From positions 1 through 64,000 of the forward strand of contig CBFDEM010000055.1 of NCBI GenBank assembly GCA_965603825.1: a stretch of 64,000 bases of DNA. Reading direction: 5' to 3'. Below are positions 1-20,200 of this stretch, piece by piece. Each line of letters opens with the position of its first letter. Positions within the stretch are counted from its first letter, which is position 1. The DNA is from Blepharisma stoltei ATCC 30299 (taxonomy: Eukaryota; Protista; Ciliophora). The notes beneath the pieces were generated by a model. It ran no database searches. It was not told the origin of the DNA and saw only the letters and a program-made list of their open reading frames with translations. The translations under genes were made by a program, and so were the position numbers.

Positions 1-3000
1 CTAACACCCTAACACCCTAACACCCTAACACCCTAACACCCTAACACCCTAACACCCTAACACCCTAACACCCTAACACCCACACCCTAACACCCTAACA
101 CCCTAACACCCTAACACCCTAACACCCTAACACCCTAACACCCTAACACCCTAACACCCTAACACCCTAACACCCTAACACCCTAACACCCTAACACCCT
201 AACACCCTAACACCCTAACACCCTAACACCCTAACACCCTAACACCCTAACACCCTAACACCCTAACACCCTAACACCCTAACACCCTAACACCCTAACA
301 CCCTAACACCCTAACACCCTAACACCCTAACACCCTAACACCCTAACACCCTAACACCCTAACACCCTAACACCCTAACACCCTAACACCCTAACACCCT
401 AACACCCTAACACCCTAACACCCTAACACCCTAACACCCTAACACCCTAACACCCTAACACCCTAACACCCTAACACCCTAACACCCTAACACCCTAACA
501 CCCTAACACCCTAACACCCTAACACCCTAACACCCTAACACCCTAACACCCTAACACCCTAACACCCTAACACCCAACACCCTAACACCCTAACACCCTA
601 ACACCCAACACCCTAACACCCTAACACCCTAACACCCTAACACCCTAACACCCTAACACCCTAACACCCTAACACCCTAACACCCTAACACCCTAACACC
701 CTAACACCCTAACACCCTAACACCCTAACACCCTAACACCCTAACACCCTAACACCCTAACACCCTAACACCCTAACACCCTAACACCCTAACACCCTAA
801 CACCCTAACACCCTAACACCCTAACACCCTAACACCCTAACACCCTAACACCCTAACACCCTAACACCCTAACACCCTAACACCCTAACACCCTAACACC
901 CTAACACCCTAACACCCTAACACCCTAACACCCTAACACCCTAACACCCTAACACCCTAACACCCTAACACCCTAACACCCTAACACCCTAACACCCTAA
1001 CACCCTAACACCCTAACACCCTAACACCCTAACACCCTAACACCCTAACACCCTAACACCCTAACACCCTAACACCCTAACACCCTAACACCCTAACACC
1101 CTAACACCCTAACACCCTAACACCCTAACACCCTAACACCCTAACACCCTAACACCCTAACACCCTAACACCCTAACACCCTAACACCCTAACACCCTAA
1201 CACCCTAACACCCTAACACCCTAACACCCTAACACCCTAACACCCTAACACCCTAACACCCTAACACCCTAACACCCTAACACCCTAACACCCTAACACC
1301 CTAACACCCTAACACCCTAACACCCTAACACCCTAACACCCTAACACCCTAACACCCTAACACCCTAACACCCTAACACCCTAACACCCTAACACCCTAA
1401 CACCCTAACACCCTAACACCCTAACACCCTAACACCCTAACACCCTAACACCCTAACACCCTAACACCCTAACACCCTAACACCCTAACACCCTAACACC
1501 CTAACACCCTAACACCCTAACACCCTAACACCCTAACACCCTAACACCCTAACACCCTAACACCCTAACACCCTAACACCCTAACACCCTAACACCCTAA
1601 CACCCTAACACCCTAACACCCTAACACCCTAACACCCTAACACCCTAACACCCTAACACCCTAACACCCTAACACCCTAACACCCTAACACCCTAACACC
1701 CTAACACCCTAACACCCTAACACCCTAACACCCTAACACCCTAACACCCTAACACCCTAACACCCTAACACCCTAACACCCTAACACCCTAACACCCTAA
1801 CACCCTAACACCCTAACACCCTAACACCCTAACACCCTAACACCCTAACACCCTAACACCCTAACACCCTAACACCCTAACACCCTAACACCCTAACACC
1901 CTAACACCCTAACACCCTAACACCCTAACACCCTAACACCCTAACACCCTAACACCCTAACACCCTAACACCCTAACACCCTAACACCCTAACACCCTAA
2001 CACCCTAACACCCTAACACCCTAACACCCTAACACCCTAACACCCTAACACCCTAACACCCTAACACCCTAACACCCTAACACCCTAACACCCTAACACC
2101 CTAACACCCTAACACCCTAACACCCTAACACCCTAACACCCTAACACCCTAACACCCTAACACCCTAACACCCTAACACCCTAACACCCTAACACCCTAA
2201 CACCCTAACACCCTAACACCCTAACACCCTAACACCCTAACACCCTAACACCCTAACACCCTAACACCCTAACACCCTAACACCCTAACACCCTAACACC
2301 CTAACACCCTAACACCCTAACACCCTAACACCCTAACACCCTAACACCCTAACACCCTAACACCCTAACACCCTAACACCCTAACACCCTAACACCCTAA
2401 CACCCTAACACCCTAACACCCTAACACCCTAACACCCTAACACCCTAACACCCTAACACCCTAACACCCTAACACCCTAACACCCTAACACCCTAACACC
2501 CTAACACCCTAACACCCTAACACCCTAACACCCTAACACCCTAACACCCTAACACCCTAACACCCTAACACCCTAACACCCTAACACCCTAACACCCTAA
2601 CACCCTAACACCCTAACACCCTAACACCCTAACACCCTAACACCCTAACACCCTAACACCCTAACACCCTAACACCCTAACACCCTAACACCCTAACACC
2701 CTAACACCCTAACACCCTAACACCCTAACACCCTAACACCCTAACACCCTAACACCCTAACACCCTAACACCCTAACACCCTAACACCCTAACACCCTAA
2801 CACCCTAACACCCTAACACCCTAACACCCTAACACCCTAACACCCTAACACCCTAACACCCTAACACCCTAACACCCTAACACCCTAACACCCTAACACC
2901 CTAACACCCTAACACCCTAACACCCTAACACCCTAACACCCTAACACCCTAACACCCTAACACCCTAACACCCTAACACCCTAACACCCTAACACCCTAA

Positions 3001-3138
3001 CACCCTAACACCCTAACACCCTAACACCCTAACACCCTAACACCCTAACACCCTAACACCCTAACACCCTAACACCCTAACACCCTAACACCCTAACACC
3101 CTAACACCCTAACACCCTAACACCCTAACACCCTAACA
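1..3138 (+). repeat. Telomeric tandem repeat (CCCTAACA)n, about 390 units
   Basis: Near-perfect 8-mer array from base 1 to ...ccctaaca|ttaatt at 3138, with only three shortened units (~80, ~575, ~605). CCCTAACA is the heterotrich (Blepharisma/Stentor) telomere unit. Confidence 0.99.
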
Positions 3139-3817
3139 TTAATTTAATAAAATATAAAATTACTAATACTAAATGGAAGGCATAATCACATTTAGATAAG
3201 CATAGATAGTAGTAGTAGAGTCTTCAGAAGTTAAAAAGACTTTCTAAAAATTTTAAAGACATGATTCTAATTCAGCCTTACAACAATGGAAATCTAAATA
3301 AACTTTATTTAAAAACCCAAGCATACTAGCTAAAGATTTGATCTTAATTTTTTAAAGAGAAGCACGAGCTCTGACTAAAATGCGTACTATAAAGAAAGAT
3401 GCGACTATGTATCTGCCCTTGCCTTTATCGAATGAAATATTGAAACGATTGATAAAAGTATACTGAAGGGGTATTTTGGAGATAGATTTTTGATTAAAGG
3501 GGCAAGACTTTGGAGTTCTGAAAAAGTATATTTGGAAATGATAACTGGATTAAAGAATTAAATATTATAGATTTCGTAAAAAATTACCAAACTAGAATAG
3601 CTTATTTTTTTGTTTTTGTATATAATATCTTTATGTCTACTCTTAGATAAAATAAGCATTTGTATATTTTTAAATATTAAAAAATGTAAAAAATCAATTA
3701 AAATTCAAATAGTAAATTTATTAAAAATTACCCAAAGGGGAAGGAGAATAATATTTATATTTTCTGTTCATTTGGCGATAAAAATATATTTAAAAAAATT
3801 TAGTTGTGAGATCTGAC

Positions 3818-3945
3818 TGTCAATTTCTTTAGGACCTTTGTAATCCCATTTATCAGAATCGATAAATATCCCTTGAATTTTTAATTTTTTCTTTTCAAAA
3901 ACGCTTATAGGCATCCTTCTATAAATCTATAATGTCTTAAATAGA
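3818..3945 (-). pseudogene. Internally deleted remnant of the N-terminal module of the subtelomeric paralog family
   Basis: tgtcaatttctttaggacc...taatcccatttatc...ttttcttttcaa matches ~5795-5875. It is joined directly to acgcttatagg..., which matches the start-codon region ~6047-6090. The start ATG is mutated. Confidence 0.7.
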
Positions 3946-4484
3946 AAGAAGACTTAAATGGGTGATTAAATAACATTTAAAGACACATATCCTATCAAAT
4001 ATAACATTCCTAAACAATAATACGTCTTACAGAGCTTATATAAAATTTATTGTATTTATTATTGCAATAGAGCTTTTAAAGCATAAAATAATTAATTCTA
4101 TTATTCATAGATATAAATGCAATTTTAATTTTTTCTTTTTGGTGAGAAGCATATATTTAGTTTCAATTAAAATCAAATTTATATCAACAGCTCTTAAGGA
4201 GCGCGATGCTTCAGTCTAAAAGCCCGAAAAGAGCAATAAGTCTGACCTGAAATATGTGGAATTCTCGAAAGTGTGAAAAATCAAAAAAATCTGAAAATTT
4301 ATTTTTAGGTAGATTAAAGACCTATTCTTACTGCGCATTTAAAATACTTCATCCTTATATGCTTTATTTCTCCAATTTTGAGAAATTTCCCAATATATTT
4401 AAAATGAATGGAATTAATATAATCTTTATTAAGAGTGTAAAAATTTAAATATCAAAATCTTATTCTAAATTAAAAGCTTAGATT

Positions 4485-6065
4485 TTAGAATTTAATTATG
4501 CTTTTCTTGTTAAGGTCAAACTTATATCAATAATTTTTAACATCACTGCACTCAGACTTATCATAAGGCTTATTATAACTATATGTAGTTATGAATTTTA
4601 AATAAAGTGCTCCATCATTATACACACTATATTTTAAATGCATCCACTCTTTCGGTGTTTTTCCAATTTTAAATCAATTATATTCATTATTTTCCTCACA
4701 TTCAAAAATTGATCCAAATAATTCGAATATATATACTCTGGAGCCATAAGAAACTAGGTATCTTGATCCTGAAAAATATAAATCTGAATATAGGATCAAG
4801 GAGAAACTGTCTATTAATAAATCAAACTTCATTATTATTCTTCAGTAATTTGTGGAGTATATAATGCTTTTATTGAATAAAATCATATTACTATAACACA
4901 TTTCTGATTGTATTTTATATTTATTCATAGTATTTTTTAATAAATTATGTTTGCATAAAACCCATGATCTTGGTTCATTTTTAGGATTTTGAAGGGAATA
5001 AACCGTACTGTCATAATACACAAATGAGCATGGTGGAATTAATTTATTAGTAGGGTTTTTCAATATCGGCATAAATTGTGAATTTGCGAAAATTTCTTCA
5101 TCGTAGCTTTTAATTTTTTTCTCTGAGAGATAAAAACGATTTCGTAATAAAAATAAATTAGTTAGGGAATTCGAAATCTGACTGTCTATTAAAATCGATA
5201 ATAAACAATTCTGAATATAATCTAGATTGAAAAAGGAATAATTCATTAAAATTTTATATCCCTTACGAATTGGCAATAAAAATTTCCTTAATGCTTTTTC
5301 TAGCTGAGACATACAATTTTGCAATCAATCAACCCATATACTTTCAATCCGTAATGACTCTAAGCAGCCAATTGTTTTATTATAAATATTAGTGGATTCC
5401 TCAACATACCCCTCATATTTTGATTTAAATCAGCTGCTTATTAGACAGAATCTATTTATTTCGTTAATAGTGCCAATCCCTAGTTGAAAGGGTAGAAGGT
5501 ATTTTTGGATTTTTTGCTTAATTTCTTCAAATGTAGAGTCGTATTTAAGCTCACAAAGCTTATTATCTTGAATAAATTGAAATTCATTTTTTACTTGAAT
5601 TGGAATTTCAGAGATTATTTTATTTATTTTATCGAGCAAGAAATTAATTCTGAAATAAGCCCAGCAGTAATTTGTGCATTTTTCTCTTATTTTCTGAGTT
5701 TTCTCCATTATATCTCATATAAGTAAATCTAAATTTCTCACACTTTTAGCTTCTAAAGCTGATTGAAACATTTCCTTAATTTTTTCTATTCCTTTGTCAA
5801 TTTCCTTAGGACCGTTGTAATCCCATTTATCTGGGTCTATAGTGATTCCTTGAATTTTTAGTTTTTTCTTTTCAAGCTCATTTTTTTCATTCAGAAGGAC
5901 TTCAAGGACTGCATTGATTTCATGCAGACTTTCGTGTTCTTTATTACAATCCTTGAGATGAGAATCGAAATGAGTAGCACAGAAAAAACTACCTGATGAT
6001 AAATAATTGCAAATATATATAACTTTAGAGCGGCAGGTTGGGATAAAACACTTATAAGCTTCCAT
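4485..6065 (-). CDS. Subtelomeric family copy 1 (contiguous, 526 aa): Cys/His-rich N-terminus, helical middle, degenerate kelch/beta-propeller-like C-terminus
   Basis: ORF-track pieces 5715-6065, 5430-5708 and 4842-5324 are in one frame, separated only by TGA. The frame continues to TAA at 4485-4487 (1581 nt, 527 codons). N-terminus is C-x4-C..C..C-x2-H-x3-H; C-terminus includes KFDLLIDSFS...GSIFECEENNEYNW...YKFDLNKKSIIKF. The fold assignment is tentative. Confidence 0.85.
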
Positions 6066-6912
6066 TCTACAAATATATAAAATGTCTTAATATCAAGAAA
6101 ACTTAATAGATAATAAAATCTCACATAAATTTATATTGTTCATCAAAATTTACATTCCTAAACAATAAAGCGACTACATTTAGTAGCATTTCAAAACCTA
6201 TACTATTACAAATAATGATGAAACCAGAATAAAGCTGGCTAATTTATCAGGGCTAAAGCGCATCAAGCTTTTTAAAATTCAAAACTCATAGTTTTCTTAA
6301 GATTCAAAAATGATCCAAAGCTTTCTCATATATATGATATGGAATTATGAGAAACAAGAAATTTTGCATCAAATATTTAGATCCCATTTCCCCAAGCTCT
6401 CCAAGCCCTCTCAAAAACCCTACTTATGATTGATAGAAAGAAATACTGAAGATACTGCAGTATATTAATTTCTGCATCATTCTAGAGCAATTTGTAGTAT
6501 AGTTTCTGATAAAAACTCTATCTCTTGGCAGTGGAATAAGATACTTTTGGGAAAAATTAACTATTTTATCAAGTTTTGCTTATATTTTGTATTAATAATT
6601 AAATGAATTTATTAGATTTATATAAAAATGAATTATTAAGAATTTTAAAACTGCTAGGCATGCTAATTGATCATAATTAATGCTTAAATATATCTTTACG
6701 GCTATTCAATTCTTTGACTTTATTTACGAATGACCCATTCAATTTGACTAATCAGATATTACTTGGTATATTCATGTTTAAGAGTGAGACCTATTAATCT
6801 AGGTTATTGAGCATAATTATAAACTTTATTAGATTAATAAATCTCGATATAATTATTAAAAAAAATATAAATATTAAAATTCTAAATTTTATGTTCTAAA
6901 ATAAACGCTTCA

Positions 6913-8648
6913 TTATAATTTAATTAAGCTTTTCTTGCTAAGGTCAAATTTAAACCAATCACTTTTCTTGATTTTATAATCTATTCTTTCTCCACTATAA
7001 TAAAAGTATATACCCTTCTTATCGAGAATACTTGGGATATCCTCGTCATCAAATAGAGTATCGATTTTGAAATAAAATGCTCCTTCATGATAGACACTAC
7101 ATTTCAAAATATTTCAATTATTATTTGTTTTCCCAATTTCGGACCAAATATATTCATTATTTTCCTCACACTCAAAAATTGATCCACAATTTTCTATTAT
7201 ATATGCTCTGGTATCATAAGAAACTAAGATTATTTTCGACCATACGTGAAAAGTCAATGGCAACTCTAATGCTTTGTCTCCATAACGTTGGCCAACTCAA
7301 ATTTCATATGCAGAAGTGTAAATACTGTACGGGAGAGCTGAAATTCAGTCACCTTAGCTTCTGGCAAAATTGCCTCAGCATAAGAACCCAGTATCAAGAT
7401 AGGAGTATAAGACAAAATCTAATTCACAAGAAAACCTCCGTGGGAGAGCTAAACTTTCTGTTTCAGCAAACTTTCCACTGAGCTGGTATATTTGTTTTAG
7501 AGTGACGACTCCATAAAATTTTTTGGTCCACCCACTCTATCAGGAGTGCATCTCAAAGCCACTATTCCATGAATGCCGCCATTTATTTTATAAGAAACTA
7601 AAATCTTCCACCCCTGGAGTTCAGAATCTGAGTATGTAATCGTAGAGCAACTGTTTATTAATAAATCGAATTTCACTATTTTTCTTTTATTTTCTAAGAA
7701 GGCAATAATGCTTTTATTGAAAAAAGCCAATTGATTATTTCAATTATTAACTCACATAAATTCATATTTATTCAGTGTATTTTTTACCAAATCATACCTG
7801 CATAGAAAATCTAATCAACATTTATTTTTATTATAATCGTAAGTACCTTTTTTAATAAAATAAATAGCATTTTCATAGTACAAAAACTGGCCATTCATAA
7901 GTTTATTATTCGGACTTTTCAATAATGACATCAACTGAGAATTTGCAATAATTTCTTCATAATCCTTAATTTTGTCATAAATTTGATTGAAAAACGACTT
8001 AAGATCTCTATATAAAATATATGAATTTGTTAACTCACGTAAAATATTATCAAAAATATTGAACTCAGTTTTTCAAAAGTATTCGTATTGCTCATTCTTA
8101 GTATAAATTCTGCTTTGTAAATATTTACTAAAAATTGAATTTTTATCTTTTACTAAAATAACTGATAAAAAATACATAGCATTAGTAAATAAGGGACTTG
8201 ATGAAGAGAATGAAATTTTTAACAATCCTTGCAAGGTTTGCAGCATAGGCATGCAATTTTCTAAAAAATCGATCAATTTGATTTCATTTTGTAATAACTC
8301 TAAGCGCTCAATCGCTTTCTTATAAATTTTATTGCATTCCTCAACATACTCCTCATATTTTGATTTAAGTCAGCTGCTTATTAGACAGAATCTATTTATT
8401 TCGTTAATAGTGCCAATCCCTAGTTGAAAGGGTAGAAGGTATTTTTGGATTTTTTGCTTAATTTCTTCAAATGTAAAGTCATTTTTTAGCTCATAAAACT
8501 TATTATCTTGAATAAATTGGATTTCATTTTCTACTTGAATTGGAATTTCAGACATTATTTTATTTATTTTTTCAAACAAAAAATCAATCCTGAAATAAGC
8601 CCAGCAGTAATTTGTGCATTTTTCTCTTATTTTCTGAGTTTTCTTCAT
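6913..8648 (-). CDS. Subtelomeric family copy 2: lacks the N-terminal module, interrupted by a 374-bp insert (453 aa if the insert is removed)
   Basis: Open with TGA=W from ATG 8648 to ILVSY. It then enters the insert (TAA at 7497). Removing 7216-7589 gives LVSY-DTRAYIIENCGSIFECEENNEY..., colinear with copy 1, to TAA at 6913. Confidence 0.75.
7216..7601. mobile_element. 374-bp insert bounded by a 12-bp direct repeat ATAAGAAACTAA (IES-like or TSD-flanked insertion)
   Basis: Repeat at 7216-7227 and 7590-7601. The empty site in copy 1 has a single ATAAGAAACTA at 4746-4756. No terminal inverted repeats seen. Confidence 0.8.
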
Positions 8649-9146
8649 AATATCTCATATAAAAAGACAGAAAAGTTAATCAGAGTCATTAAAGAAAATG
8701 CTTTGCTAATATTTTGTAGGATACCTGCAAAGATTAATATTTTGCCAGAGATATGCTTATTACTAATAATAAAAACCGCTCTAATTTGGAATTTAGAAAA
8801 ATATCATAAGTAGCACATATATTTTACTCTTGAATTGACTCAATTTTGCAAGCAATATGAGCATGCTTTACTAAAGCTTATAAGTTGTTAGAAATGCTTT
8901 ATTAAATTTATTTAAATTAAAAGTAAGATGGTGATACTCTCAGCATTATCAGTCAAAGGATATTTAATTCAATTTAATAATTTGGCTATCCTTTTCATTA
9001 CTAAAATTAGCTTCTAATTTGAAAACTATAAATCGAAGCTTTAAAGTATATTGAGCATCATTATAAACTTTATTAGATTAATAAAACTCAATATAATTAT
9101 TAGCAGAAATAAAGAATATAAATATTAAAATTCTAAATTTTATGTT

Positions 9147-11615
9147 CTAAAATAAATGCTGCATTTCGAATTTAATTAAACTTTTCTTGTTAAGGTCAAA
9201 TTTATATCATTCTTCTTTGATTTCGTAGGATGTTCAACTCTCATAAATATTATCCTCCATATCAATAATATCCTTATGACTATTATAAAAATAAACACCC
9301 TTCATATCAAATTTAATTTTACTATGGATTTTGAAATAAAATGCTCCATCATTATACACACTGCATTCCAAATTATCTCAGTGATAATTTGTTTTCCCTA
9401 TTTCAGACCAAATATATTCATTATTTTCCTCACACTCAAAAATGGATCCATAATTTTCAAATATATATGCTCTGGTACCATAAGAAACTAATGCTGGCCA
9501 ACTCAAACTTCATATACCGAAGTTTAAATACTGCAAGGGGAGCTAAAATTCAATCATCTTAAGCTTCTTGCAAAATTCCCTCTGCTAAGGAAACAGATAA
9601 TCATGATAAGACAAAACCTAATTCACAAGAAAACCTCCGTGGGAGAGCTAAACTTTCAGTTTCAGCAAGCTTTCCATTGAGCTGGTCTATTTGTTTAAAA
9701 GCGATTTTACCAAAAATCTTTCTAGTCTATCCTCTCCATAAGGAGTGCACCTCAAAACAACTATTCCATGAATGCCATCATTAATTTTATAAGAAACTAA
9801 AAACTTTCACCCCTTGAATTTATTATCTGAATATGTAATCATAGAGTAACTGTCTATTAATAAATCGAATGTCACTATTTTTCTTTCATTTTCTACCAAA
9901 GCAATAATGCTTTTATTGAAAAAAGCCAATTTATTTTCTATTTTATTAATTCTCATAAATCAATATTTATTCAAGGTATTTTTTACCAAATCGTATCTGC
10001 ATAGAAAATCTAGTGAATCTTTATTTTTATCGAAAGTAGCATCTTTATAAAAATAAATAGCATTTTCATAGTACAAAAATTCGTCATTAATGAGTTTATT
10101 ATTTGGGCTTTTCAATAATGACATCAATTGCGAATTTGCAATAATTTCTTCAAAATAGTTAATTTTGTCCAGTTTCAAATACTTTTCATTAAAAAACCGC
10201 TTATATTTTCTATAAAAATCCTTATGTAAACTATATGTTCCCTCTTGTAATAAAAAATTATCAAAAACATTGACTTCAGGAATCTTGCCACTTAAAAAAA
10301 ATCTGTTTTGCTCAGTTTCAGTATAAAAGCTTTGCAAATACTTTTGTTTAATATTACTAAAGATTGAATTTTTTTCTTTTACTAAAATCAATGACCAAAA
10401 ATACAGGATAAATTTTTCAGTATAGTAATCAATAGAAAATTTATTTGAACCTAATTCTAACAATTCTAGTAAGGGTTGCAGTTTAGACATGCAATTTTCT
10501 AATCAATCTATCCGTATGCTATCATTTTGTAATAACTCTAATCGCTCAATCGTTTTCTTATAAATTTTATTGCGATCCTCAACATACTCCTCATATTTTG
10601 ATTTAAATCAGCTGCTTACTAGACAGAGCCTATTTATTTCATTAATAATGCCAATCTCTCTCTGTAAGGGCAAAATGCATTTTTGAAAATTTTGCTTAAT
10701 TTCTTCAAATGTAGACTCGTTTTTAAGGTCATAAAACTTATTATCTCGAATAAATTGAAATTTATTTTCTACTTTAACTGAAATTTCTTTATTTATTTTT
10801 TCATACCAGAGATTAATCCTGTAATAAACCCAGCAGTAATTCGTACATTTTTCTCTTATTTTCTGAGTTTTCTTCATCATATCTCATATAAAAAGGAAGA
10901 AAAATTAACCAGAGTCATAGAAACAAACAGCTTCCTAGTTATTTAGATCAATATTTTTTATGATACCTGTTTAAAGATGCTTAATTAATTGAACATAAAT
11001 ATTTGTCAGAGATAAGTTTATTATAAATATTATGTAAAAAATAGACATTGGATAATATAAAACCTTTCTTGTTCTACTTCTTTTACATTATACATATTTA
11101 ACAGTCGATAAAAAGGGGTGTTTACCGATTATAAAAGACTGTATAATAATTATAATTTTCTGAATATGGGCATGAGTCAATATTCTGTCAGACTTTAAAT
11201 ATCTTTATTAAAAGCATAAAAATACCTTCAAAACTTTTTATAATAAATAATAATTAGGATTATCTCATATAAGTAATTCTAAATTTTTTGCACTTTTAGC
11301 CTGAAGTGCTAAAAGGAATATTTTGCTAATTTTCTCTATTCCTTTGTCAATTTCTTTAGGACCGTTGTAATTTCACTTATCTGGGTCGATAATTATTTCT
11401 TGAATTTTTAGTTTTTTCTTTTCAAGCTCAATTTTTTCATCCAAAAGCATTTCAAGGATTGCAATTATTTCATGAAGACTCCTGTGCTCTTTATTACAAT
11501 CTTTGAGATGAGAATCGAAATGGGTGGCACAGAAAAAATTGCCTGATGATAAATAATTGCACATATATAAAACTTGAAAGGGGCAGGCTGGGATAAAACA
11601 CTTATAAGCTTCCAT
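9147..11615 (-). CDS. Subtelomeric family copy 3: full length (592 aa) only after removing two inserts (381 and 309 bp)
   Basis: ATG 11615 (MEAYKCFIP) runs to ELLIWD, then insert A, MMKKTQK..., FLVSY, insert B, GTRAYIFENYGSIFECEENNEY... and TAG at 9147. 2469-381-309=1779 nt (593 codons), with no TAA/TAG when TGA=W. Confidence 0.8.
9480..9800. mobile_element. 309-bp insert bounded by ATAAGAAACTAA direct repeat, homologous to the 374-bp insert in copy 2
   Basis: Repeat at 9480-9491 and 9789-9800. Internal sequence is shared with 7228-7589 (e.g. aattcacaagaaaacctccgtgggagagctaaacttt). Contains an in-frame TAG at 9687. Confidence 0.8.
10880..11272. mobile_element. 381-bp AT-rich insert bounded by a 12-bp direct repeat TATCTCATATAA
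   Basis: Repeat at 10880-10891 and 11261-11272. Deleting the insert recreates the copy-1 junction (5711-5722) and the frame LLIWD-MMKK. An in-frame TAA lies inside the insert. Confidence 0.8.
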
Positions 11616-12042
11616 TCTATAGATTTCATTATCACATAGATAGCAATTTTTTTAATATTAAAAAAATTCGTTTACTCACAGAGGAAAATTTTACTTCTTT
11701 TTTTGGTTGAAATTAACTAAAGTCAATATTTAATGTCGTAAAATCGAATGATAATGCATGGATTTTTCATTTTACTAGAACCTCAATTTATAGGATATTT
11801 ATTTTATAATAATCTCTTTATTCCCAATTTTTTGGCCTAATTTTCAGACATTAGCAGAAAGAAAATTTCAATGAAGAGATATTAATCTTTAATAGATAAT
11901 AAACTTTTATAAAATAGTCTTCATCTAGATATGCAAATTAAGACATCCGAAGCTCTACGTTTTGAATAAATTCAATTATATAAATTAAATAAGACTAAAA
12001 AAATAATGAATTTATTTAAACCCATTTTAAACCTTGTAATAG

Positions 12043-12264
12043 CTAGCAACCCTTCAATCTCTTAAAGGCAACGATACGGCAATTGTTAACAAGCCCTAAC
12101 TGTTCTAAAGTAAATCCAATTTCTTCTGACAAATGTCGATTTTTATAAATCACATCAAGTTCAAGTTCGTTGCTCCCAAGCATCTCCGCTAAAATGCTTC
12201 GAAAGTGAGCAAGTTTCCACAATCTGTTTACTTGTATTTTTGCGCTTTTAATAATAAAATGCAT
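12043..12264 (-). CDS. Ubiquitin-like protein (73 aa) ending RLKGC
   Basis: MHFIIKSAKIQV...DVIYKNRHLSEEIGFTLEQLGLVNNCRIVAFKRLKGC-TAG parallels ubiquitin LIFAGKQLEDGRTLSDYNI..LHLVLRLRGG in both length and pattern. The start codon is inferred. Confidence 0.65.
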   Translation of the reverse strand: MHFIIKSAKIQVNRLWKLAHFRSILAEMLGSNELELDVIYKNRHLSEEIGFTLEQLGLVNNCRIVAFKRLKGC

Positions 12265-12506
12265 AAGAAAGGAATCTGCTCTCTCTAAGAGTGATATGGA
12301 GGTTAAGATCAACTAATAAAATTTCTTTCAATTATCGAATTTCAGAATTTAAAGTGATTAAATGAAGGTGCTCTGGATAATAAAATATCCCAAAAAGTAT
12401 GAAAACTAAAAGCTTATTGGAAAGGGCATTGATATCAATATTTTGAAAATTAATTAATATCTTGACCATATAACACCACTATAAATCATAATTAAGAGTT
12501 TTTTAA

Positions 12507-13629
12507 TTATTTATGAGAGATCACGTAAAAAGCTAGATATGCATGTGACATGTCAATAGATTGTAAGCTAGCATTTCTTGTTATGAGATCATTATATTCA
12601 GTCCAATTATTCGTATCCCATGTATATGCTATAAAATGTCTTCTATAATCGCATATTAAGCCATACAGCTTGTAAGTATAATATTCTGTATGTGTTCACG
12701 AATGCTTGCAGGTCATTTATATTCTGTTTTAATTAACTATAGATCAACGACCATGAATAATAGGTAGCAATTATTTTCTCGCGATTTTTCCCTGAAGACT
12801 ATTCTTGGGAACTATTTGGCTCAGTAAAAAGCTTTTTATCGAATAATGTCTAATAAGAAAAATCTTAGCCAAATGTCGCAGATGGAGAGTTAGAAAGAGA
12901 AAATGTCGTGGAGGAAAAGACATACAGCCAAATAAAAGTAATCTTATTGAATAAAATAGCTATAATCCCTTCAATATTTAATTCTTCATTAATCTCTATT
13001 CTTCTATTATTATGAGATGGGAAATAAAAGGAAATTGTAGATGGCCAATCAATACCCTCAGTCTCAATAGTAATATCTCTAGGTTGATCGCACCTTTCAC
13101 AATATAATTTATTATCGCCATAGAAAATTTTTGGCTCTCTAAGATTTTCTAAAGTATCTTGTATCGAATTGCAGTTATTCCTTGGGACTACAATAGATTC
13201 TGATATTTCATTGCATTTTGTAATGCTCGAACAAGCATGGCAGATAAAATGGTTTTCAAAAGTTATTGAAAATGAAGTATCATTACATAAATCTGATAAC
13301 TTACCCATAATAACTGCCATCACTTCTTTAGGGTCGTTAAAATTGGGAATACTAAACTATGTAAACATTACCATTGGGAATTCTGCGTTAACCTGGTTTA
13401 TAAATAATCTCACAAGTTGCTTTATATTGCCAGACCCAGGATTTCTAATACTAGATAATAGTGATGATAGAGTAGACAATAATCTATTTTCCGTATGCTG
13501 AATTTTCTCACAAAATTCATTATTGCTTGCAAGAATTTGCAAAAATGAATTAAGATAGCATGTATTTTCTATGTTTGGAATCCCTGATTTTATTCTATCA
13601 TATATCAGCGAACGATTTATAGATATCAT
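12507..13629 (-). CDS. Minimal USP (peptidase C19) deubiquitinase, 273 aa, with a 15-nt intron (13357-13371) and a 286-bp insert (12677-12962)
   Basis: Cys box GIPNIENTCYLNSFLQIL and zinc-finger pairs CHAC/CERC. The His-box segment YKLYGLICDYRRHFIAY...WTEYND...AYLAFY lies at 12507-12676 and is missed by the ORF track. Removing intron and insert leaves 822 nt in frame. Confidence 0.85.
12677..12964. mobile_element. 286-bp TA-bounded IES-like insert
   Basis: TA at 12677-12678 and 12963-12964. Inward-reading ends are TATAATATTCT and TATAGCTATTT. Excision leaving one TA gives ELNIEG-ITYKLYG in frame. Confidence 0.75.
13357..13371 (-). other. 15-nt spliceosomal intron (USP)
   Basis: GTAATGTTTACATAG; splicing removes an in-frame TAG. 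Confidence 0.9.
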
Positions 13630-14275
13630 TATAATTTTTATAGATTTGAGTTTTATTTCATGAATCTATAAATCGCTAAAGTTAAAATATGGCAGATCTC
13701 TATGTTTAAATTTAGAAACCTTTTGAAACTAATATCTTGTGAGAAAAATCAATACCACTTGCAATTTTACTAGTAAAGCTAAATTTTCCTATGAAATAGA
13801 TTCAATAAATTATTTCACAAAATCCAATTATTAATTTTAAACATAATTAAGCTTAAGATGTTCTCTTTATCTCTATGAAAGCATGAATAACGCAGTTATT
13901 AGCCAATCCCAATTGCTCTAAAATAGAAGTTTCTTAAGCATTCATACTCAAAAACTTGCCCGAAAACTGCAATTAATCCGTAGCAAGCTATGGACTTATA
14001 CAAGTCACTAATGATACAAATTAAGAAGCGTTAATCACGGCCTTACCCGCCCGAATAAATAAAACTTTTGTTGACATCAAAGAGGTTAAAAACAAAAAAT
14101 TCTCTCACAAAAATCGACGAGGAGATAAAACGACGAGAATTAGCTGAAAATAAATAAAAGCAAAGCAGAAAACCTCTTATTGATGAAATAAATTGATGAT
14201 TTTCATAATTTGAATAATTATAATATCAATGTATTATAGCATATTAAAAAAATTGATTTCATATTTAAAATGTCA

Positions 14276-17200
14276 TTAATCTTCATCAAAAACAATATCT
14301 TTATCATGCTTCGGTACCACAAAATAACTGTTCAGCGATCTCCCTGTCGGCTCATATTTTACCACTTTATTGAAATCATAATCAAACCTCCCAGGTGCCT
14401 GTCCTTCAATAATTGCCTTAGCTATTTCACTTACATTAATTTTCCCAGCAAACCCATTGCTTTCCATTTTGTTCGCGATATCATTATCTGGCCCATAAAT
14501 ATCATATCTCACTATATTTGTCCCCGTAATCCCAGCTATAACTTCTCCCGTATGAATCCCAATTCTCATATTTAAATTTATTTTTTTGCTTTTATTTACC
14601 CTTTTGATAGCTTTTATCATATCCAAAGCCATTTCTAGGACATTAAGACACTCTGAAGGTGGGTCTCTATTTTCTCCATCTGTAAAGCCTAAGATTACAT
14701 AGCAGTCTCCTATTGTATGAACTTTATATACATTGTGTCGGACACAGAGGTGGTCAAAAATAGAAAAAAGCTTAGAAAGCATAGAGACTACGTCGATTGG
14801 GTCTTTATCAGAAGACCACATTGTAAATCCTACAATATCAGCATAAAGAATGGTAACATCATAATACCTATCAGTAGTTGTGACATCGTTGTGTAGGTTT
14901 CTTAAAACTTGAGGAGGGATCATTTGATTTAAGAGCTTTTCTGTGTTCTTTATTTCTCTTTGAGCACGCTTGTTTAGATTATAAGCTTTTCTTGATTGTC
15001 ATTCTGTTATAAAGCTAATTATAGCGTTAATAGCAAAAAATGCTAAAATAAGCAAAGTTGACTGGACAGCCATAAATTCATCCACATTGCTCATAGACAC
15101 AATACAAATCCAATGCCCTGCATTAATAACAGTTGCAAACAAAATATACCCAAATGGCAGCCCACTAATATGGTTAATCACTAAATTTGTATACATAATC
15201 TCCAACGCCACCACATTTATAAAATAGCTCGGCATTGTTGCAATGGAAACTGCACTCAGCAAGCTCTCAATTATATAAAGCAACATAACAGCCCATGGAA
15301 ATAATGAAGATTTATAAACGTTTTTAAATACCGAAACCAAATAAAACATAGTCGCCAAACATGCAAATCTCAGAACAATTTCTGGGATAGACCCTTGGTT
15401 CCTATCAAGAATAAAAGCTGTAATAAAAATAATGGTCCGAATGGTATATGTGGTAATAGTCAGTCACAGCCCATAAATTAGTCCTTTTAGGTCTCTTTCA
15501 ATGCCAGACAGTCTGAAATCTTTTTGGATATCAGTTTCTTTAAAGCTGCAAACTAGCCATTCTACAGGCCCGACAAGCTCTAAATCACTGTCTTCTTGTG
15601 AGGTTAAATCAGCAAGCTCGAATTTTTGGGCTGCTTTTGTGGTCTCATCTTCTATAGTGATTTGTTGGGTTTGCATTCTTTTGTCCTCAGCCATTAATGG
15701 CTCTATACTTTTGTCGATAGCGTCTATGGAGTCTTCACCGTTCCATTTGCTACTGCTTCCTCCTAAATATACAGCCCGCCTTGTTTTCCGTCTAGCTTTT
15801 TGATTGTCTACTATAAAAGTGTTTAAAAGCCCTTTGCCTTTGGCTTCAACTTTATTAGGAATAAAATTATATTTGGTGTGGTCTCTGATAAAATTATAAG
15901 TTTCTGATGAAATTTGTATGGAATCGGGGGTTTTTAAGGTAGAGCACATTCTTGAGGCGGTATTTACAGTGTCTCCGACTAAGGAAAACTGAGGTTTATG
16001 CTCTCCTACGACTCCAGCAATAACTGAGCCAGTGTTTATTCCGATTTTCACTTGCAGTTTGTGCCCATTTTTAAGTGAAACTGGTTCAAGTTTTTGTAAA
16101 ATTTTGATAGCAGCTTCTAAGCACCTTTCAGCATGATTAAGTTTCAGCTGTTTTGTAGAGAGACTAGCTTCACTATCAGCTAAGCCTCCACAGATCACAT
16201 AAGTTTTATTAACAGTTTCTATTTTGGTAACACCTAATTTTTCGCATAGCCCATCCAGCATAACAAAAAATTTGTCAAGAAGTTCTAATAGCTCATTAGG
16301 TGATAATGATGAACAAATTTTATCAAAATCATATATATCACAAAATACCACAGTGACGCTGCTTTGTTTTTCAGCAATATATCTCACTCCTTCTTTTACT
16401 CTATCTTTTACAAAATTTGGCAATAAATTACTCAAGATGTCTTGGCCTTTTTGGAATTGAAATTCCAGCTTTCGCTGAAACACAAATTCTTCACGGGCAA
16501 ACTTTTCTAGTAAATACCCTACATATGTACTGACTAAAAAAATCCCTATAGAAAGCACTGCATAATTAAATAAAATAATCAAAGCATCCCTGACGTCTTC
16601 ATCTAAGGAATACATAATAGCCATATACACCAAATAAGCAAATAAGAAAATTGCATTTATGATACAAATTTTGTAGTTCCCCACGTTGAATATAAAGAAA
16701 TTTAAGGTTATAACCAGAGCTGTGCTTAATGAGGAATCATAATGATAGAAAACTTCATGGACAAACTTAAACAGCAGATAAGATGCTACAAATGCAAGGA
16801 TTCATACATCAAATTGCCTTATAAACGATTTTCTAGTGGAAAACCATAAAATAAAAAAGCATAGGCATAGTAAAACACTGTAAGAGACGACAACTCCAAT
16901 ATTCCCTGTATTTGAGATAATTACATACAATTCGAAGGCAATACCTAATATAATGATAAGTCTTGCGAGAGCTGTCATAAATTTTGTGATTCTTTGAATT
17001 ATATGAGTTTTGTAGGTTTTTTCGACGTAGGGGTGCTTGAATTGGAGGAAAATGTTGTGGAAGGCATAGTAGTCGTGGTCTTCGTCTTCATTAGCACCCA
17101 TATCGACATTTTTGGGGATGAAAACTTTGTTGAGACAGTCTGCATATTCTTTGACCCTCATAAGGACGAGCTTAGTTCTGTTTTTGGACCTCATTTGGTA

Positions 17201-20200
17201 TCTTTTACTGGGGGCAACTTTGGAATTTTTCACTATTAAAGAATCAGCCTTGGTGGGGTACCACAACATTCCTATATACTTAACAGTAATATAATGAATG
17301 GCGTTAATAACTGGAACCATCATCATACTCACAATATAATACGGAAAATAAAATGTCTTTGTTGAAATTCCCCACATAATATAATTTCCATACCCACTAT
17401 AATCATACCAAAAAATCAGTGGATAAAACAATAGGATGCTCACCCCAGAAGTCCAAAAAAACAGTCAAGTCCAATCATAAGATTCCACTGTAATTACATA
17501 ATTGACCGTTTTTATAGCTATTGCAAATGCTACAACTCCTGTAATATCTAAAGACTGTGGAAACCCATCAACAGTAATCGCATTTACAACAGCCCCATAC
17601 ATGAACCCAAATAGTATTCCACTATGTACAACAGCGAACATAGACCACCTTATAAATCACCGAAGATTGAATTTTCGCTTATAAATGCCATCTGTATAGA
17701 GGACTGGGCGATTTATTATTACTTCTTTACTAAGATCTCTGTCAAGACTGCCTACAATTACGATAGGAAGAGAAGTGAAAACGACGTTGTAGAGAGTCAT
17801 AAGGAAGGAGTCATAAAAGGAGGTGCCGCTGAAGAGATTTATAAAGCTGAAGTAGAAGTTGGGGAGAACTAGCATAAAATTTTTGTAAAATGAGTATAAG
17901 ATAACCTTGGAAACTCTGTTATAGTTTCATCTGCCGTGAATAAGTAGCAAGGGGACTAAATAAGCAAATCTTGCGATTACATACTCGCTAGCATTTGCAG
18001 CCTGCATACCTTCTTTGCCACAGATCCCAACACCTATATGAGCTTCTTGGATCATAGAAACGTCATTAGCCCCATCTCCTATAGCAAGAGTCATAGGCTT
18101 AAATGCTAATCTTTTTTTGACTATTTTTACAAGCTCTGATTTCTGTAATGGGGTAACTCGGCACAAAATGACTGCATGGCATAAGCTAGCAAGCATCATA
18201 AAGTATTTTACAGTAATGGGGTCATTAATTATAAACCCCAAAGCTCGGCCGTCAACTACTAAGCCTATGTTCAGGCTTTCTAAATTTTTTACCTTTAAGT
18301 CCCCTTCAAACATCTCTCCATCATCAGGAATTACTTGATACCTTGTGTTTTTCCTTGTATGATTGTGGTTGATGGTATTTCCAGGTGTATTATCAGTGAC
18401 ACACCTTATTTTATTAAGTACGCTGTTATGACGGTTTTTCTCACCTTTTACATATCTTGCTAAATGTGCCTTAATAAGCCCTCTTGATTCCTCTAAGGTA
18501 TTTGCAGCAATTTTAATAATATCCATATCAGGCTGCAATAATTTGCATGAATAGCCTATATTTACAGCTGTTTCTGTCCTATCTCCTGTTAACACCCATA
18601 CTTTGATTCCTCCCTCCATAAGTGTTTCTATAGCTTCTGGGACTCCTTCTTGAATTTTATCTTCAACAGCCGCAGCCCCTATCAAATCCATATCTTTTTC
18701 AAACTCTTCAGCAAGCTCATAAAGCCTTGCTGCCTTATCAGAAAGGGCATTTTTAGCTGTATTATATCGGATTTGATAGTCATTGGCTTGCTCCATCGTT
18801 AGTTCACGGCGTCCTAATACAAAAGTCCTAAGACCAGATAAAGAAAATTCATCAAGATGCTTATTAATAGTAATAATGTCTTGAGAAGACCCTAAGCAGC
18901 GCTCAAGCATGACACTATCCGCACCTTTACAAAGCAAAATCACGTTTCTATTCCTTTCACTCATAGGCTCTACTACAATTGACATACGTTTTCGTTCTGA
19001 ACTAAATTCATTTATCCCTAAAATCCTGTATTCTAAGGTTTCTCCATTGATTCTTAAAGAAATTGAGCTGTCTTTGTAGCCTATTAAAGAATAACCAAAA
19101 CAATGTGCAGCTATTACTAATGCCTCTTCATCAGGAGAAGCAGCCTGATATATTGGCTCCCCATCAAAATCAAAATCTGGGGTAACCGTATTACAGAGCG
19201 CTAAAAGTTCAAAGAAATCTCCAATTTCTTTTTTCCCTTTGGTTTGCATATCTTCTAACAAATCTGGGTCCCAAAATTCAAATTTTTTGTGAGGATTTAC
19301 TTGACATTTTTGAAATCTTTCGTTTTCTTGGTTAAATCCATAAGATTTTCCTTTAATAGAGCACATTTTAAATTCCATAACATTTTCTGTCAAAGTCCCA
19401 GTTTTATCAGTAAAAATATACTCGATTTGTCCTAAATCCTCATTTAAATCCCCAGTTTTTACTGAAGCAGGCATATCTGTTTCATCATAATACATCGAAT
19501 TATCTCACTGGATAAGCTTTGATTGGACTGCTTTTACAATATCAAGAGTAATATATAAAGAAATAGGAATCAAGCTATTATAAAGAATCAAAAAAGTAAT
19601 AAATGATATTGGTGATAATTCATATGTAGACCCTGAAAAGTAGCTGAATTGGTCTGAGTTTGAATATGACTGGGTCATATAAATTGCGGTGTCGAGGAAT
19701 GCAATTGCAAAGAGAAAAGTGAAAATTATTGTAAGATAACTGTTTATTTTTTTCTCAAGGTTGCTCACTTTATGAGGAGGATGCTTTGAGTTTTTCATTA
19801 ATTTTGTGTCATTTCCAGTAAAAACGACCAAACCAATTATTCATGGAGTGTTTTTTAGTGTGCTGCTTTGCAAAATCATATTTCCTAAATATACAGGAGT
19901 TGCTCGGGGATAGCCTTTTAGCTTAAGCCACCCTTCAAAAGAGTGCAGCCTATTATTTGGCTGTTCAGTTTTTAAAACCCCATCTTCAATTATATGCATA
20001 TTTTTCATAGCCTCAATCGGTGTGGTTCCTTCCATTACGCTCGAAATTTCATTCAAGCATTTTTTAAGTTTCAAACTTTCTTCTCCATCCAGACTTGTCG
20101 TTTCTACATAACATACTTTTTCTCTATGCCCTGAAGCCAATAACATTATATCAGCAGGGACATGGACTTCTCCTTCCAGCAGCACAATATTCCCCACTCT

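Follow-up and report, generated by a model that had tools for sequence, protein, structure and literature searches.

The Blepharisma lineage split early from the model ciliates. The MAC of B. stoltei contains about 10,000 cryptic IESs, resident segments that only a minority of molecules have lost, and excision is described as a continuum (PMC9942856). Paramecium has maternally inherited IES retention and IES-like switches, such as excision at the mtA promoter, in which a germline segment is kept or excised depending on the line and the encoded product changes. Plasticity of retention (PMC6771405) and the dynamics of IESs (PMC3464196) have been described in this genus. Alternative MDS processing in Chilodonella and Oxytricha yields several MAC molecules from one germline segment and involves paralogous coding modules with short direct repeats at their borders (PMC4324306, PMC4684698). 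Transposons and retroposons with target-site duplication are characterized by an exact direct repeat around foreign DNA and by a paralogue with an empty site.

We describe here an array of paralogous genes in B. stoltei ATCC 30299, located in a window of 64,000 nucleotides (the whole stretch of DNA that was analysed), where three inserts, named A3, C2 and C3, are flanked by 12-bp direct repeats, or pointers. Like Blepharisma IESs and cryptic IESs (Seah et al. 2023, PMC9942856), these inserts are intragenic and non-repetitive, are a few hundred base pairs long, have TA-containing direct repeats, and restore the frame on removal. They differ in being present in the MAC reference outside the annotated IESs, in having repeats of 12 bp versus the usual 2-4 bp, and in that exact absence was observed only in another strain. 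The locus would resemble the Paramecium switches in that a germline segment is kept or excised in a line-dependent manner, with an altered product; the genes are orphans here. It shares paralogous modules and border repeats with the Chilodonella and Oxytricha genes (PMC4324306, PMC4684698), but here every copy corresponds to a separate germline segment, all on one contig, no alternative junction was found in four runs, and the stretch that is identical in copies 1 and 2 is consistent with gene conversion. As with transposons and retroposons, an exact repeat surrounds foreign DNA and a paralogue has an empty site, whereas the inserts have no inverted termini, poly(A), coding remnant or other MAC copies. 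The locus is a case of known phenomena, namely IES retention and cryptic IESs, and reveals no new joining mechanism. It offers a compact natural example of the loose boundary between "eliminated" and "kept" DNA in a ciliate, with old insertions that are retained in the soma of one strain and absent from that of another.

A subtelomeric array of orphan paralogs

The array is subtelomeric and adjoins a MAC telomere tract at positions 1..3138 that consists of 389 CCCTAACA units (last unit start 3131), the repeat unit being the one reported for B. stoltei (PMC9942806). Three paralogs lie in tandem, all on the minus strand, in a genome with UGA as Trp, and TGA was read as Trp throughout. Copy 1 (4485..6065) is an intact, insert-free A-B-C gene of 526 codons (ORF 6065..4488), whose translation equals the deposited protein P0002. 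Its pointers are single, and it is the empty-site state; no germline IES was found between 161 and 6802 in the MAC+IES assembly. In copy 2, module C (6913..7215, minus strand; 100 codons plus stop) is followed by insert C2 (7216..7589, 374 bp including one pointer copy, with 12-bp repeats at 7216 and 7590) and by module B (7590..8662, minus strand), which starts with pointer 1 (8651-8662) and corresponds to a deposited model of 383 aa. Insert C2 disrupts the frame, with a stop 31 codons past the last codon of the pointer; its length is not a multiple of 3, and taking out the 374 bp restores a frame of 458 codons. Copy 3 carries both kinds of insert. Its module C (9147..9479, minus strand; 110 codons plus stop) is separated by insert C3 (9480..9788, 309 bp including one pointer copy, with repeats at 9480 and 9789) from module B (9789..10879, minus strand), the ORF of which is represented by the deposited 397-aa model P0001 that begins at Met codons right after pointer 1 and stops inside insert C3. 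Insert A3 (10880..11260, 381 bp including one pointer copy, with repeats at 10880 and 11261) is followed by the Cys/His-rich N-terminal module A (11261..11615, minus strand), which is 78% identical to module A of copy 1, has been called separately as a 125-aa gene and is covered by a putative RNA contig at 11342-11608. Removal of 381 and 309 bp from copy 3 gives 592 codons. The three tandem paralogs, the contiguous copy 1 with single pointers and the doubling of both pointers around inserts in copy 3 had been described in an earlier sequence-only reading, and this layout was reproduced in full.

Module relics are also present in the array. Nearest to the telomere, a relic of module A ("copy 0"; 3747..3899, minus strand) sits within ORF 3561-3926 and shows 55% identity to copy 1 residues 64-115 (E 1.8e-10). 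A relic of module C was found by sequence similarity at 6286-6366, overlapping a 117-bp TAT-bounded intergenic segment (6346..6462) that is present in the reference MAC and missing from a second strain, X8.

The paralogs constitute an orphan gene family whose proteins are B-box-like at the N-terminus, helical in the middle and rich in beta structure towards the C-terminus. Its members are confined to this locus among 1.84 billion representatives searched, and a search for alleles in other strains and species returned only two deposited proteins of this locus. No significant match to Pfam was obtained with either the pieces or the whole proteins, and scans of positions 3100-14000 for Rfam families (E up to 1) and tRNAs found nothing. 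In the Atlas search, the N-terminus had a weak lead to the B-box (0.81), and the matches of the middle region did not convince; the AlphaFold model of copy 1 alone (pLDDT 36) is of value only for a rough outline of secondary structure. The copies are 15-30% divergent from one another, with dN/dS of 0.49-0.56; values near 0.5 denote moderate constraint only.

Pointers, inserts and their shared history

Exact copies of pointer 1 start at 5711, 8651, 10880 and 11261, and the rest of the window contains none even with one mismatch allowed. Those of pointer 2 start at 7216, 7590, 9480 and 9789; copy 1 has an 11/12 match at 4746, and two unrelated 11/12 matches lie elsewhere in the window (42965 and 51332). 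All array positions agree with those given by the sequence-only reading, as does its statement that like pointers share one codon phase (phase 1 for pointer 1 and phase 0 for pointer 2). The flanking repeats measure exactly 12 bp each, the adjacent bases differing on both sides, and a 12-nt match at both ends of an insert is expected by chance with a probability of ~2e-7 at the local base composition. Both 12-mers contain TA, at positions 1, 8 and 10 in one and at 2 and 10 in the other, as in TA-containing terminal repeats of the IES type. By our count, all pointer copies (4/4 of pointer 1 and 4/4 of pointer 2) are intact despite 19% divergence of the inserts. Identical 12-mers appear repeatedly, and in one codon phase, because the insertions were inherited through tandem duplication; the earlier reading had anticipated that pointer sharing follows in part from paralogy, and the openness of every A/B/C combination is indeed a trivial result of it.

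The presence of 12-bp repeats at the inserts and of single 12-mers in copy 1 corresponds to the empty-site pattern of target-site duplication. A 12-bp duplication is not known to fit any cut-and-paste superfamily. The inserts contain no terminal inverted repeats, poly(A) tail or coding remnant and have no further copies in the 41.5-Mb MAC assembly. Insert C has 37-40% GC versus 28% in the coding sequence of copy 1, and its core is ~95% identical over some 93 nt, under a putative RNA contig inside insert C3 (9603-9758). A hosted small RNA or SINE head in insert C was considered and dropped: neither strand of the core folded better than shuffled sequences (z between -0.9 and +0.4), and no coding-type substitution pattern was seen. 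An origin of the inserts as tandem duplications of a neighbouring module was likewise rejected, no similarity being found. Insert A3 is unique in the MAC assembly; contig ends at 11020 and 11163 in run X1 hint that part of it recurs in unassembled DNA.

Inserts C2 and C3 are 81% identical, like the exons, and therefore insert C predates the split of copies 2 and 3. Modules C2 and C3 are translatable only with insert C removed, and exact removal of the inserts restores the reading frame, as it does for IESs, giving the 592 and 458 open codons. Had the copies drifted neutrally after copies 2 and 3 separated, the probability of remaining stop-free would be ~0.003 per copy for module B and ~0.2 per copy for module C. 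All indel events are in frame (9/9 in module B and 4/4 in module C), and module C of copy 2 is still open. The C modules have stayed coding since that split.

In copy 2, the 5' third of module B shares 97-100% identity with copy 1, a sign of gene conversion between them. It includes an exact match of 106 nt (5430-5535 = 8370-8475) that occurs twice in the MAC+IES assembly too, and the boundary of the mosaic lies at ~codon 220-240, away from any pointer. According to the earlier reading, pointer 1 of copy 2 has no partner before copy 3; no module A follows it, as stated, but a homologue of insert A does. This remnant (8663..9048) was left behind copy 2 and aligns over 8663-~9033 with 10892-~11248 of insert A3 (score 128 versus a shuffled maximum of 82); therefore, the breakpoint of the duplication was close to the distal end of insert A. 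The remnant holds germline IESs of 53 and 67 bp, and its end, where the 3' flank of copy 3 begins (a repeat at 9049-9142 matching 6805-6898), marks the duplication breakpoint. These alignments bear out the simpler alternative of the earlier reading, in which a gene that already carried its interruptions was duplicated in tandem, the breakpoint falling in insert A.

State of the inserts in two strains

In the MAC+IES assembly of the reference strain, contig 55 (GCA_914767885.1) differs from the window by the addition of 15 germline IESs, whose repeats are 0-8 bp long and mostly contain TA. Inserts A3, C2 and C3 are all absent from these 15 IESs, and the reference strain treats the three inserts as MAC-destined. 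Contigs of the same-strain run X1 span the inserts at a depth of 79-92 versus 96-98 for the exons, without any joint; one contig (10848-11428) covers insert A3 whole, and two others (7429-7731 and 9628-9930) cross the right edges of C2 and C3. The inserts of the reference strain are consequently not germline-limited, that term being used for DNA of the MIC that the mature MAC lacks, and no excised form was seen among the contigs of this strain, which drop rare variants (Logan). In the germline, insert C3 hosts an extra 258-bp TAA-bounded repetitive IES at 9489-9492, which is excised while the 297-bp insert stays, and module B of copy 3 is interrupted in the germline by two IESs, one of 134 bp at 10204 and one of 71 bp at 10587. 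IES versus retained status differs among paralogous stretches within the array: a 62-bp IES upstream of the copy 3 ATG is 84% identical to the MAC-retained segment 6070-6131 upstream of copy 1, and the 53-bp IES in the insert-A remnant of copy 2 matches the retained A3 sequence 11018-11043.

Joints were sought in the contigs of four runs (X1, X7, X8 and X9), which represent two strains and include one mRNA-like run. X8 comes from the second strain, probably HT-IV, which differs by about 35 SNPs over the array stretch. One contig in this run joins 7215 to 7590 with 12 ambiguous bases, so that insert C2 is exactly absent; exact absence was found for this insert only. A second joint, 6345->6463, removes the 117-bp segment with ends TA..TA and 3 ambiguous bases, and the right edge of a 221-bp deletion (6803/6804) coincides with the germline IES site 6803. 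The three deletions of X8 relative to the reference fall within 1.3 kb. Insert C3 has a depth of 0 in X8, and insert A3 has almost none. Two more joints in X8, 6871->8901 and 9945->11327, were set aside as unreliable, having 21 letters on one side, high depth and AT-rich repeats. No joint between pointers of different copies was present in the contigs of the four runs, a weak test as contigs drop rare forms. An apparent cross-copy joint in X7, 8756->11018, is not at a pointer and starts at most 2 nt from the germline IES site 8754; it is best read as the IES+ germline form placed on a paralogue, because the IES at 8754 is paralogous to 11018-11043.

Explanations of the interrupted copies

The observations to be accounted for are the anatomy and paralogy of the array, the presence of the inserts in the MAC of ATCC 30299, the exact absence of C2 in another strain and the coding constraint. 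We lean towards the explanation that the inserts are facultative, strain-variable IESs carried by old insertions and gene duplication. Insertions A and C would have occurred in the gene from which copies 2 and 3 both descend, and a 12-bp direct repeat of the target came to flank each of them, with copy 1 left empty. A later tandem duplication of ~2.2 kb, broken near the far end of insert A, would have produced copy 2, without module A, and copy 3. Precise removal of the inserts between the repeats over evolutionary time may have kept the downstream modules coding. ATCC 30299 retains the inserts in essentially all MAC copies, and therefore copies 2 and 3 would be read as truncated pieces, and the second strain would have at least insert C2 removed; we infer that the absence of C2 in X8 reflects developmental excision. 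By analogy with Paramecium IESs, insert retention is probably a heritable, epigenetic state of MAC development. If retention is both heritable and strain-specific, genome editing would switch orphan genes between full-length and truncated forms, and the locus would lend itself well to testing the maternal-scanning model in Blepharisma. Against the facultative-IES explanation, the operational definition of an IES does not cover the inserts of the reference strain, 12 bp is long for Blepharisma IES repeats, of which TA, TAT and TATA are the commonest (PMC9942856), and exact absence concerns C2 alone, in one contig of one run.

Alternatively, the inserts could be plain germline insertions, MAC-destined and never excised, with copies 2 and 3 being decaying pseudogenes and X8 having lost C2 by a germline slip between the 12-bp repeats. 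This is an unlikely but serious possibility, consistent with the flank-like same-strain depth over the inserts, their lack of annotation as IESs, the separate deposited genes of 125, 397 and 383 aa, the restriction of the orphan family to this locus among the 1.84 billion representatives, and dN/dS of about 0.5. Decay is, however, difficult to reconcile with stop-free ORFs of 458 and 592 codons and with indels that are all in frame even in the C modules behind the insert C stop; nor does it sit well with pointer copies that are all intact while the inserts diverged by 19%, or with three X8 deletions within 1.3 kb, one TAT-ended and one sharing a known IES edge. The sequence-only reading had proposed pointer-guided excision across copies, at the DNA or RNA level, that would build chimeric proteins such as A3-B2-C2 and A3-B3-C2 from one locus. 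Like pointers are identical and in phase, every combination is open (A3-B2-C2, put at 573 codons, has 572 codons plus stop), copy 2 lacks a module A, and deletion between one like pair does occur, as the 7215->7590 contig of X8 attests within a single copy. But the cross-copy part found no counterpart in X1, X7, X8 or X9, where the 8756->11018 joint of X7 lies away from pointers and is best read as the IES+ germline form; open combinations are already predicted by paralogy, the mosaicism of copies 1 and 2 is explained by a conversion tract with its boundary off the pointers, and local excision, as seen in the MAC+IES assembly, employs other, short TA-type repeats and leaves the inserts in the MAC. 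We consider such joining very improbable, and equally so its low-frequency, strain- or stage-limited form, in which chimeras like A3-B2-C2 would make this a somatic module-shuffling locus in a heterotrich. Splicing of the inserts from RNA as unusual long introns would also restore the frame, yet GT..AG is absent in all 13 registers of each insert, the lengths of 309-381 bp contrast with Blepharisma introns of 15-16 nt (PMC9942806), the sole putative RNA contig in the body of copy 3 falls inside insert C3, and C2 is already missing from the DNA of another strain, making this explanation still less credible. Least probable of all is an assembly artefact, which the earlier reading had named as a possible refutation. 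Tandem paralogs sharing stretches of 30-106 nt may confuse assemblers, but contigs built separately from run reads reproduce the junctions (10848-11428, 7429-7731 and 9628-9930), at least 54% of sampled words were present in each of seven runs, and 15-30% divergence of the copies excludes erroneous collapse or duplication.

For annotators, the array carries a warning: the three "genes" into which the deposited annotation splits it are pieces of interrupted paralogs.

Organization of the array and its gene family

The first ~3.1 kb of the window consist of CCCTAACA repeats, TGA encodes tryptophan in its genes, and all genes of the paralog array lie on the minus strand. Copy 1 (6065..4488) is intact and comprises 526 codons. 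Copy 3 (11615..9150) has 592 open codons once 381 bp (insert A3, 10880-11260) and 309 bp (insert C3, 9480-9788) are taken out, and copy 2 (8663..6916), which is without module A, has 458 open codons after taking out 374 bp (insert C2, 7216-7589). Two relics accompany the genes, namely a module-A fragment adjoining the telomere (copy 0, 3747-3899) and a C-module fragment (6286-6366). A search of the window located both 12-mers that serve as pointers at exactly the positions claimed in the sequence-only reading, and its arithmetic was reproduced on recomputation. Each insert-flanking repeat is 12 bp and no longer, and a 12-bp match at both insert ends is expected by chance with P ~2e-7. In the neighboring USP-like gene, an insert at 12677-12964 is absent from the annotated germline internal eliminated sequences (IESs), the closest annotated sites being 11620 and 13292. 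This brings to four the inserts within 13 kb of the telomere that are retained in the macronucleus (MAC) and break the frame.

The array genes have no match in Pfam. Among 1.84 billion representatives, the B module matched one, P0001, a deposited 397-aa model in which module B of copy 3 reads on into insert C3. The only B-module homologues are those of the array locus, and the family is an orphan. For the Cys/His-rich N-terminus, the genome contains about 35 weak relatives, and there is a weak B-box lead. A low-confidence structure model (pLDDT 36) suggests that pointer 2 falls inside a beta-rich C-terminal region, and not at a domain border.

Duplication history of the inserts and pointers

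Copies 2 and 3 are related by a 2.2-kb repeat unit. The segment behind pointer 1 of copy 2 (8663 to ~9033) aligns with insert A3, scoring 128 where shuffled sequences reach at most 82, with the best fit in the first 150 nt; this insert-A homologue runs into the sequence flanking copy 3 on its 3' side (9049-9142, matching 6805-6898). The identity between inserts C2 and C3 (81-83%) is roughly equal to that of the exons. Given the insert-A homologue behind copy 2 and the exon-like identity of C2 and C3, both insertions are older than the copy 2/3 duplication, the breakpoint of which is placed by these alignments close to the far end of insert A. Empty insertion sites are seen in copy 1. The sequence-only reading had offered, as its simpler alternative, tandem duplication of an already interrupted gene with a breakpoint inside insert A, and this is what the alignments give.

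Copy 2 is a mosaic, in which codons 118-220 match copy 1 at 97-100% and the remainder is nearer to copy 3. Copies 1 and 2 share exact matches of 106 nt (5430-5535 and 8370-8475) and 55 nt (5650-5704 and 8590-8644), and outside of them differ by 30% across module B. The identical stretch looks like a gene-conversion tract, seemingly a recent one, with an inner boundary away from any pointer.

Germline IESs and strain differences at the locus

The germline form of the locus was reached via the encoding locus of P0001 in the assembly GCA_914767885.1 (contig 55, 161-21559, reversed), and was set against window positions 161-17891. This stretch fits the 'MAC + IES' hybrid assembly of PMC9942856. 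It is identical to the window except for 15 additional germline IESs of 53-1375 bp, all of which lie between 6.8 and 17.9 kb; from the telomere to 6802, a span of 3.7 kb, the comparison gave none. The IESs are inserted at 6803 (96 bp, with a 1-bp terminal repeat, G), 8754 (53 bp, TA), 8870 (67 bp, TTT), 9492 (258 bp, TAA), 10204 (134 bp, TTA), 10587 (71 bp, TCAACATA), and 11620 (62 bp, no terminal repeat), followed by eight more at 13292-17346 (71-1375 bp, terminal repeats of 2-7 bp). Inserts A3, C2, and C3 are not among the 15. In ATCC 30299, the excision machinery is active at the array and acts at short repeats, most of which contain TA; the three inserts are left in the somatic DNA.

The 258-bp IES (9489-9492) is placed on the TAA that ends the left pointer 2 of copy 3. 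It has 175 nt in common, at 85% identity, with the 1375-bp IES at 17310, and its right end (GGAGT+AA) resembles the published terminus of Bogo/BogoMITE elements. The 62-bp IES at 11620 is directly upstream of the copy 3 ATG, and its excision possibly removes promoter-proximal DNA of this gene. It is 84% identical to the MAC-retained segment 6070-6131 upstream of copy 1, and its counterpart upstream of the copy 0 relic (3931-3974) is likewise MAC-retained; judged from these alignments, the status of a segment as IES or as macronuclear-destined sequence (MDS) is visibly unstable among paralogs.

Read evidence was taken from Logan contigs, not raw reads, of four sequencing runs (X1, X7, X8, and X9). 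X1 represents the same strain, with zero differing letters. One of its contigs (10848-11428) spans insert A3 whole and others cross the right-hand boundaries of C2 and C3, at depths of 79-92 for insert-spanning contigs, close to the 96-98 of exons; the X1 contigs contain no deletion joints. Within insert A3, X1 contigs match 11020-11163 and then pass into unrelated sequence on both sides. No second copy of this segment was found in the MAC assembly (41.46 Mb, 64 contigs), and the segment may belong to a repeat whose other copies are germline-limited or unassembled. X7, also from the same strain, has a bigger contig set, fitting a MIC-enriched library, and one of its contigs departs from the reference at 10201, at the IES site 10204. 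An apparent X7 joint, 8756 to 11018, begins no more than 2 nt from the IES at 8754. Since that IES is paralogous to 11018-11043 (88% identity), we infer that the joint is the IES-containing germline form placed on a paralogue, and not a recombinant.

About 35 single-letter differences assign X8 to another strain, probably HT-IV, which was sequenced in the MAC genome paper (PMC9942806). In one X8 contig, 7215 is joined to 7590, with 12 ambiguous bases, so that insert C2 is exactly missing; the right side of this contig is 99.5% identical to copy 2. X8 is also without a TAT-bounded segment of 117 bp (6346-6462) and without 221 bp at 6583-6803. The right edge of the latter (6803/6804) is within 1-2 nt of the site of the 96-bp IES of the reference strain, which suggests one IES at 6803 with differing left boundaries in the two strains. 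At C3, X8 carries an in-frame change of 101 nt to 32. Its depth is zero across insert C3 and near zero across insert A3, with a junction listed for neither.

Proposed facultative retention of the inserts, and the search for cross-copy joints

We propose that the pointers recur across copies as the 12-bp target repeats of old insertions passed on through tandem duplication, and that the inserts would be facultative IESs, retained in the MAC of ATCC 30299 and removed, at least in the case of C2, in another strain. The instability of IES or MDS status among the paralogs fits the published description of excision as a continuum, with ~10,000 cryptic IESs in the B. stoltei MAC (PMC9942856), and the maternally inherited IES retention known in Paramecium. 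In the main rival reading, the indel is a plain germline one and copies 2 and 3 are decaying pseudogenes. This accounts for insert retention, but leaves unexplained the coding constraint and the fact that the X8 deletions have IES-like edges. The between-copy dN/dS is 0.49-0.56; at 8% change per lineage, the neutral probability of remaining stop-free is ~0.003 for module B and ~0.2 for module C, per copy; and all copy 2/3 indel events are in frame (9/9 in B and 4/4 in C). Insert C is older than the split and introduces a stop 31-33 codons past the pointer, so coding capacity in the C modules would have persisted only if the insert was removed most of that time. GT..AG ends are found in no register of the inserts and Blepharisma introns are 15-16 nt long (PMC9942806), so removal at the DNA level would be the natural reading.

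The sequence-only reading had further proposed that pointers of different copies could be joined, assembling alternative proteins as in alternative MDS processing. The contigs of the four runs contain zero cross-copy joints, although they are a weak test for rare forms, and the defining feature of alternative MDS processing, one germline segment in several MAC molecules, was not found at the B. stoltei array. Every combination of A, B, and C is open, but only as a consequence of the copies being paralogs.

X9, guessed to be RNA, is limited to two segments, 11342-11608 in module A3 and 9603-9758 within insert C3, with no contig across the examined part of copy 1. A core of ~93 nt in insert C (7405-7500 and 9604-9700) matched nothing in Rfam and showed neither a significant fold nor a coding signal. 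It is ~95% identical between copies, above the exons, with a 40-nt exact run inside, and the only presumed RNA contig in the body of copy 3 overlies it.
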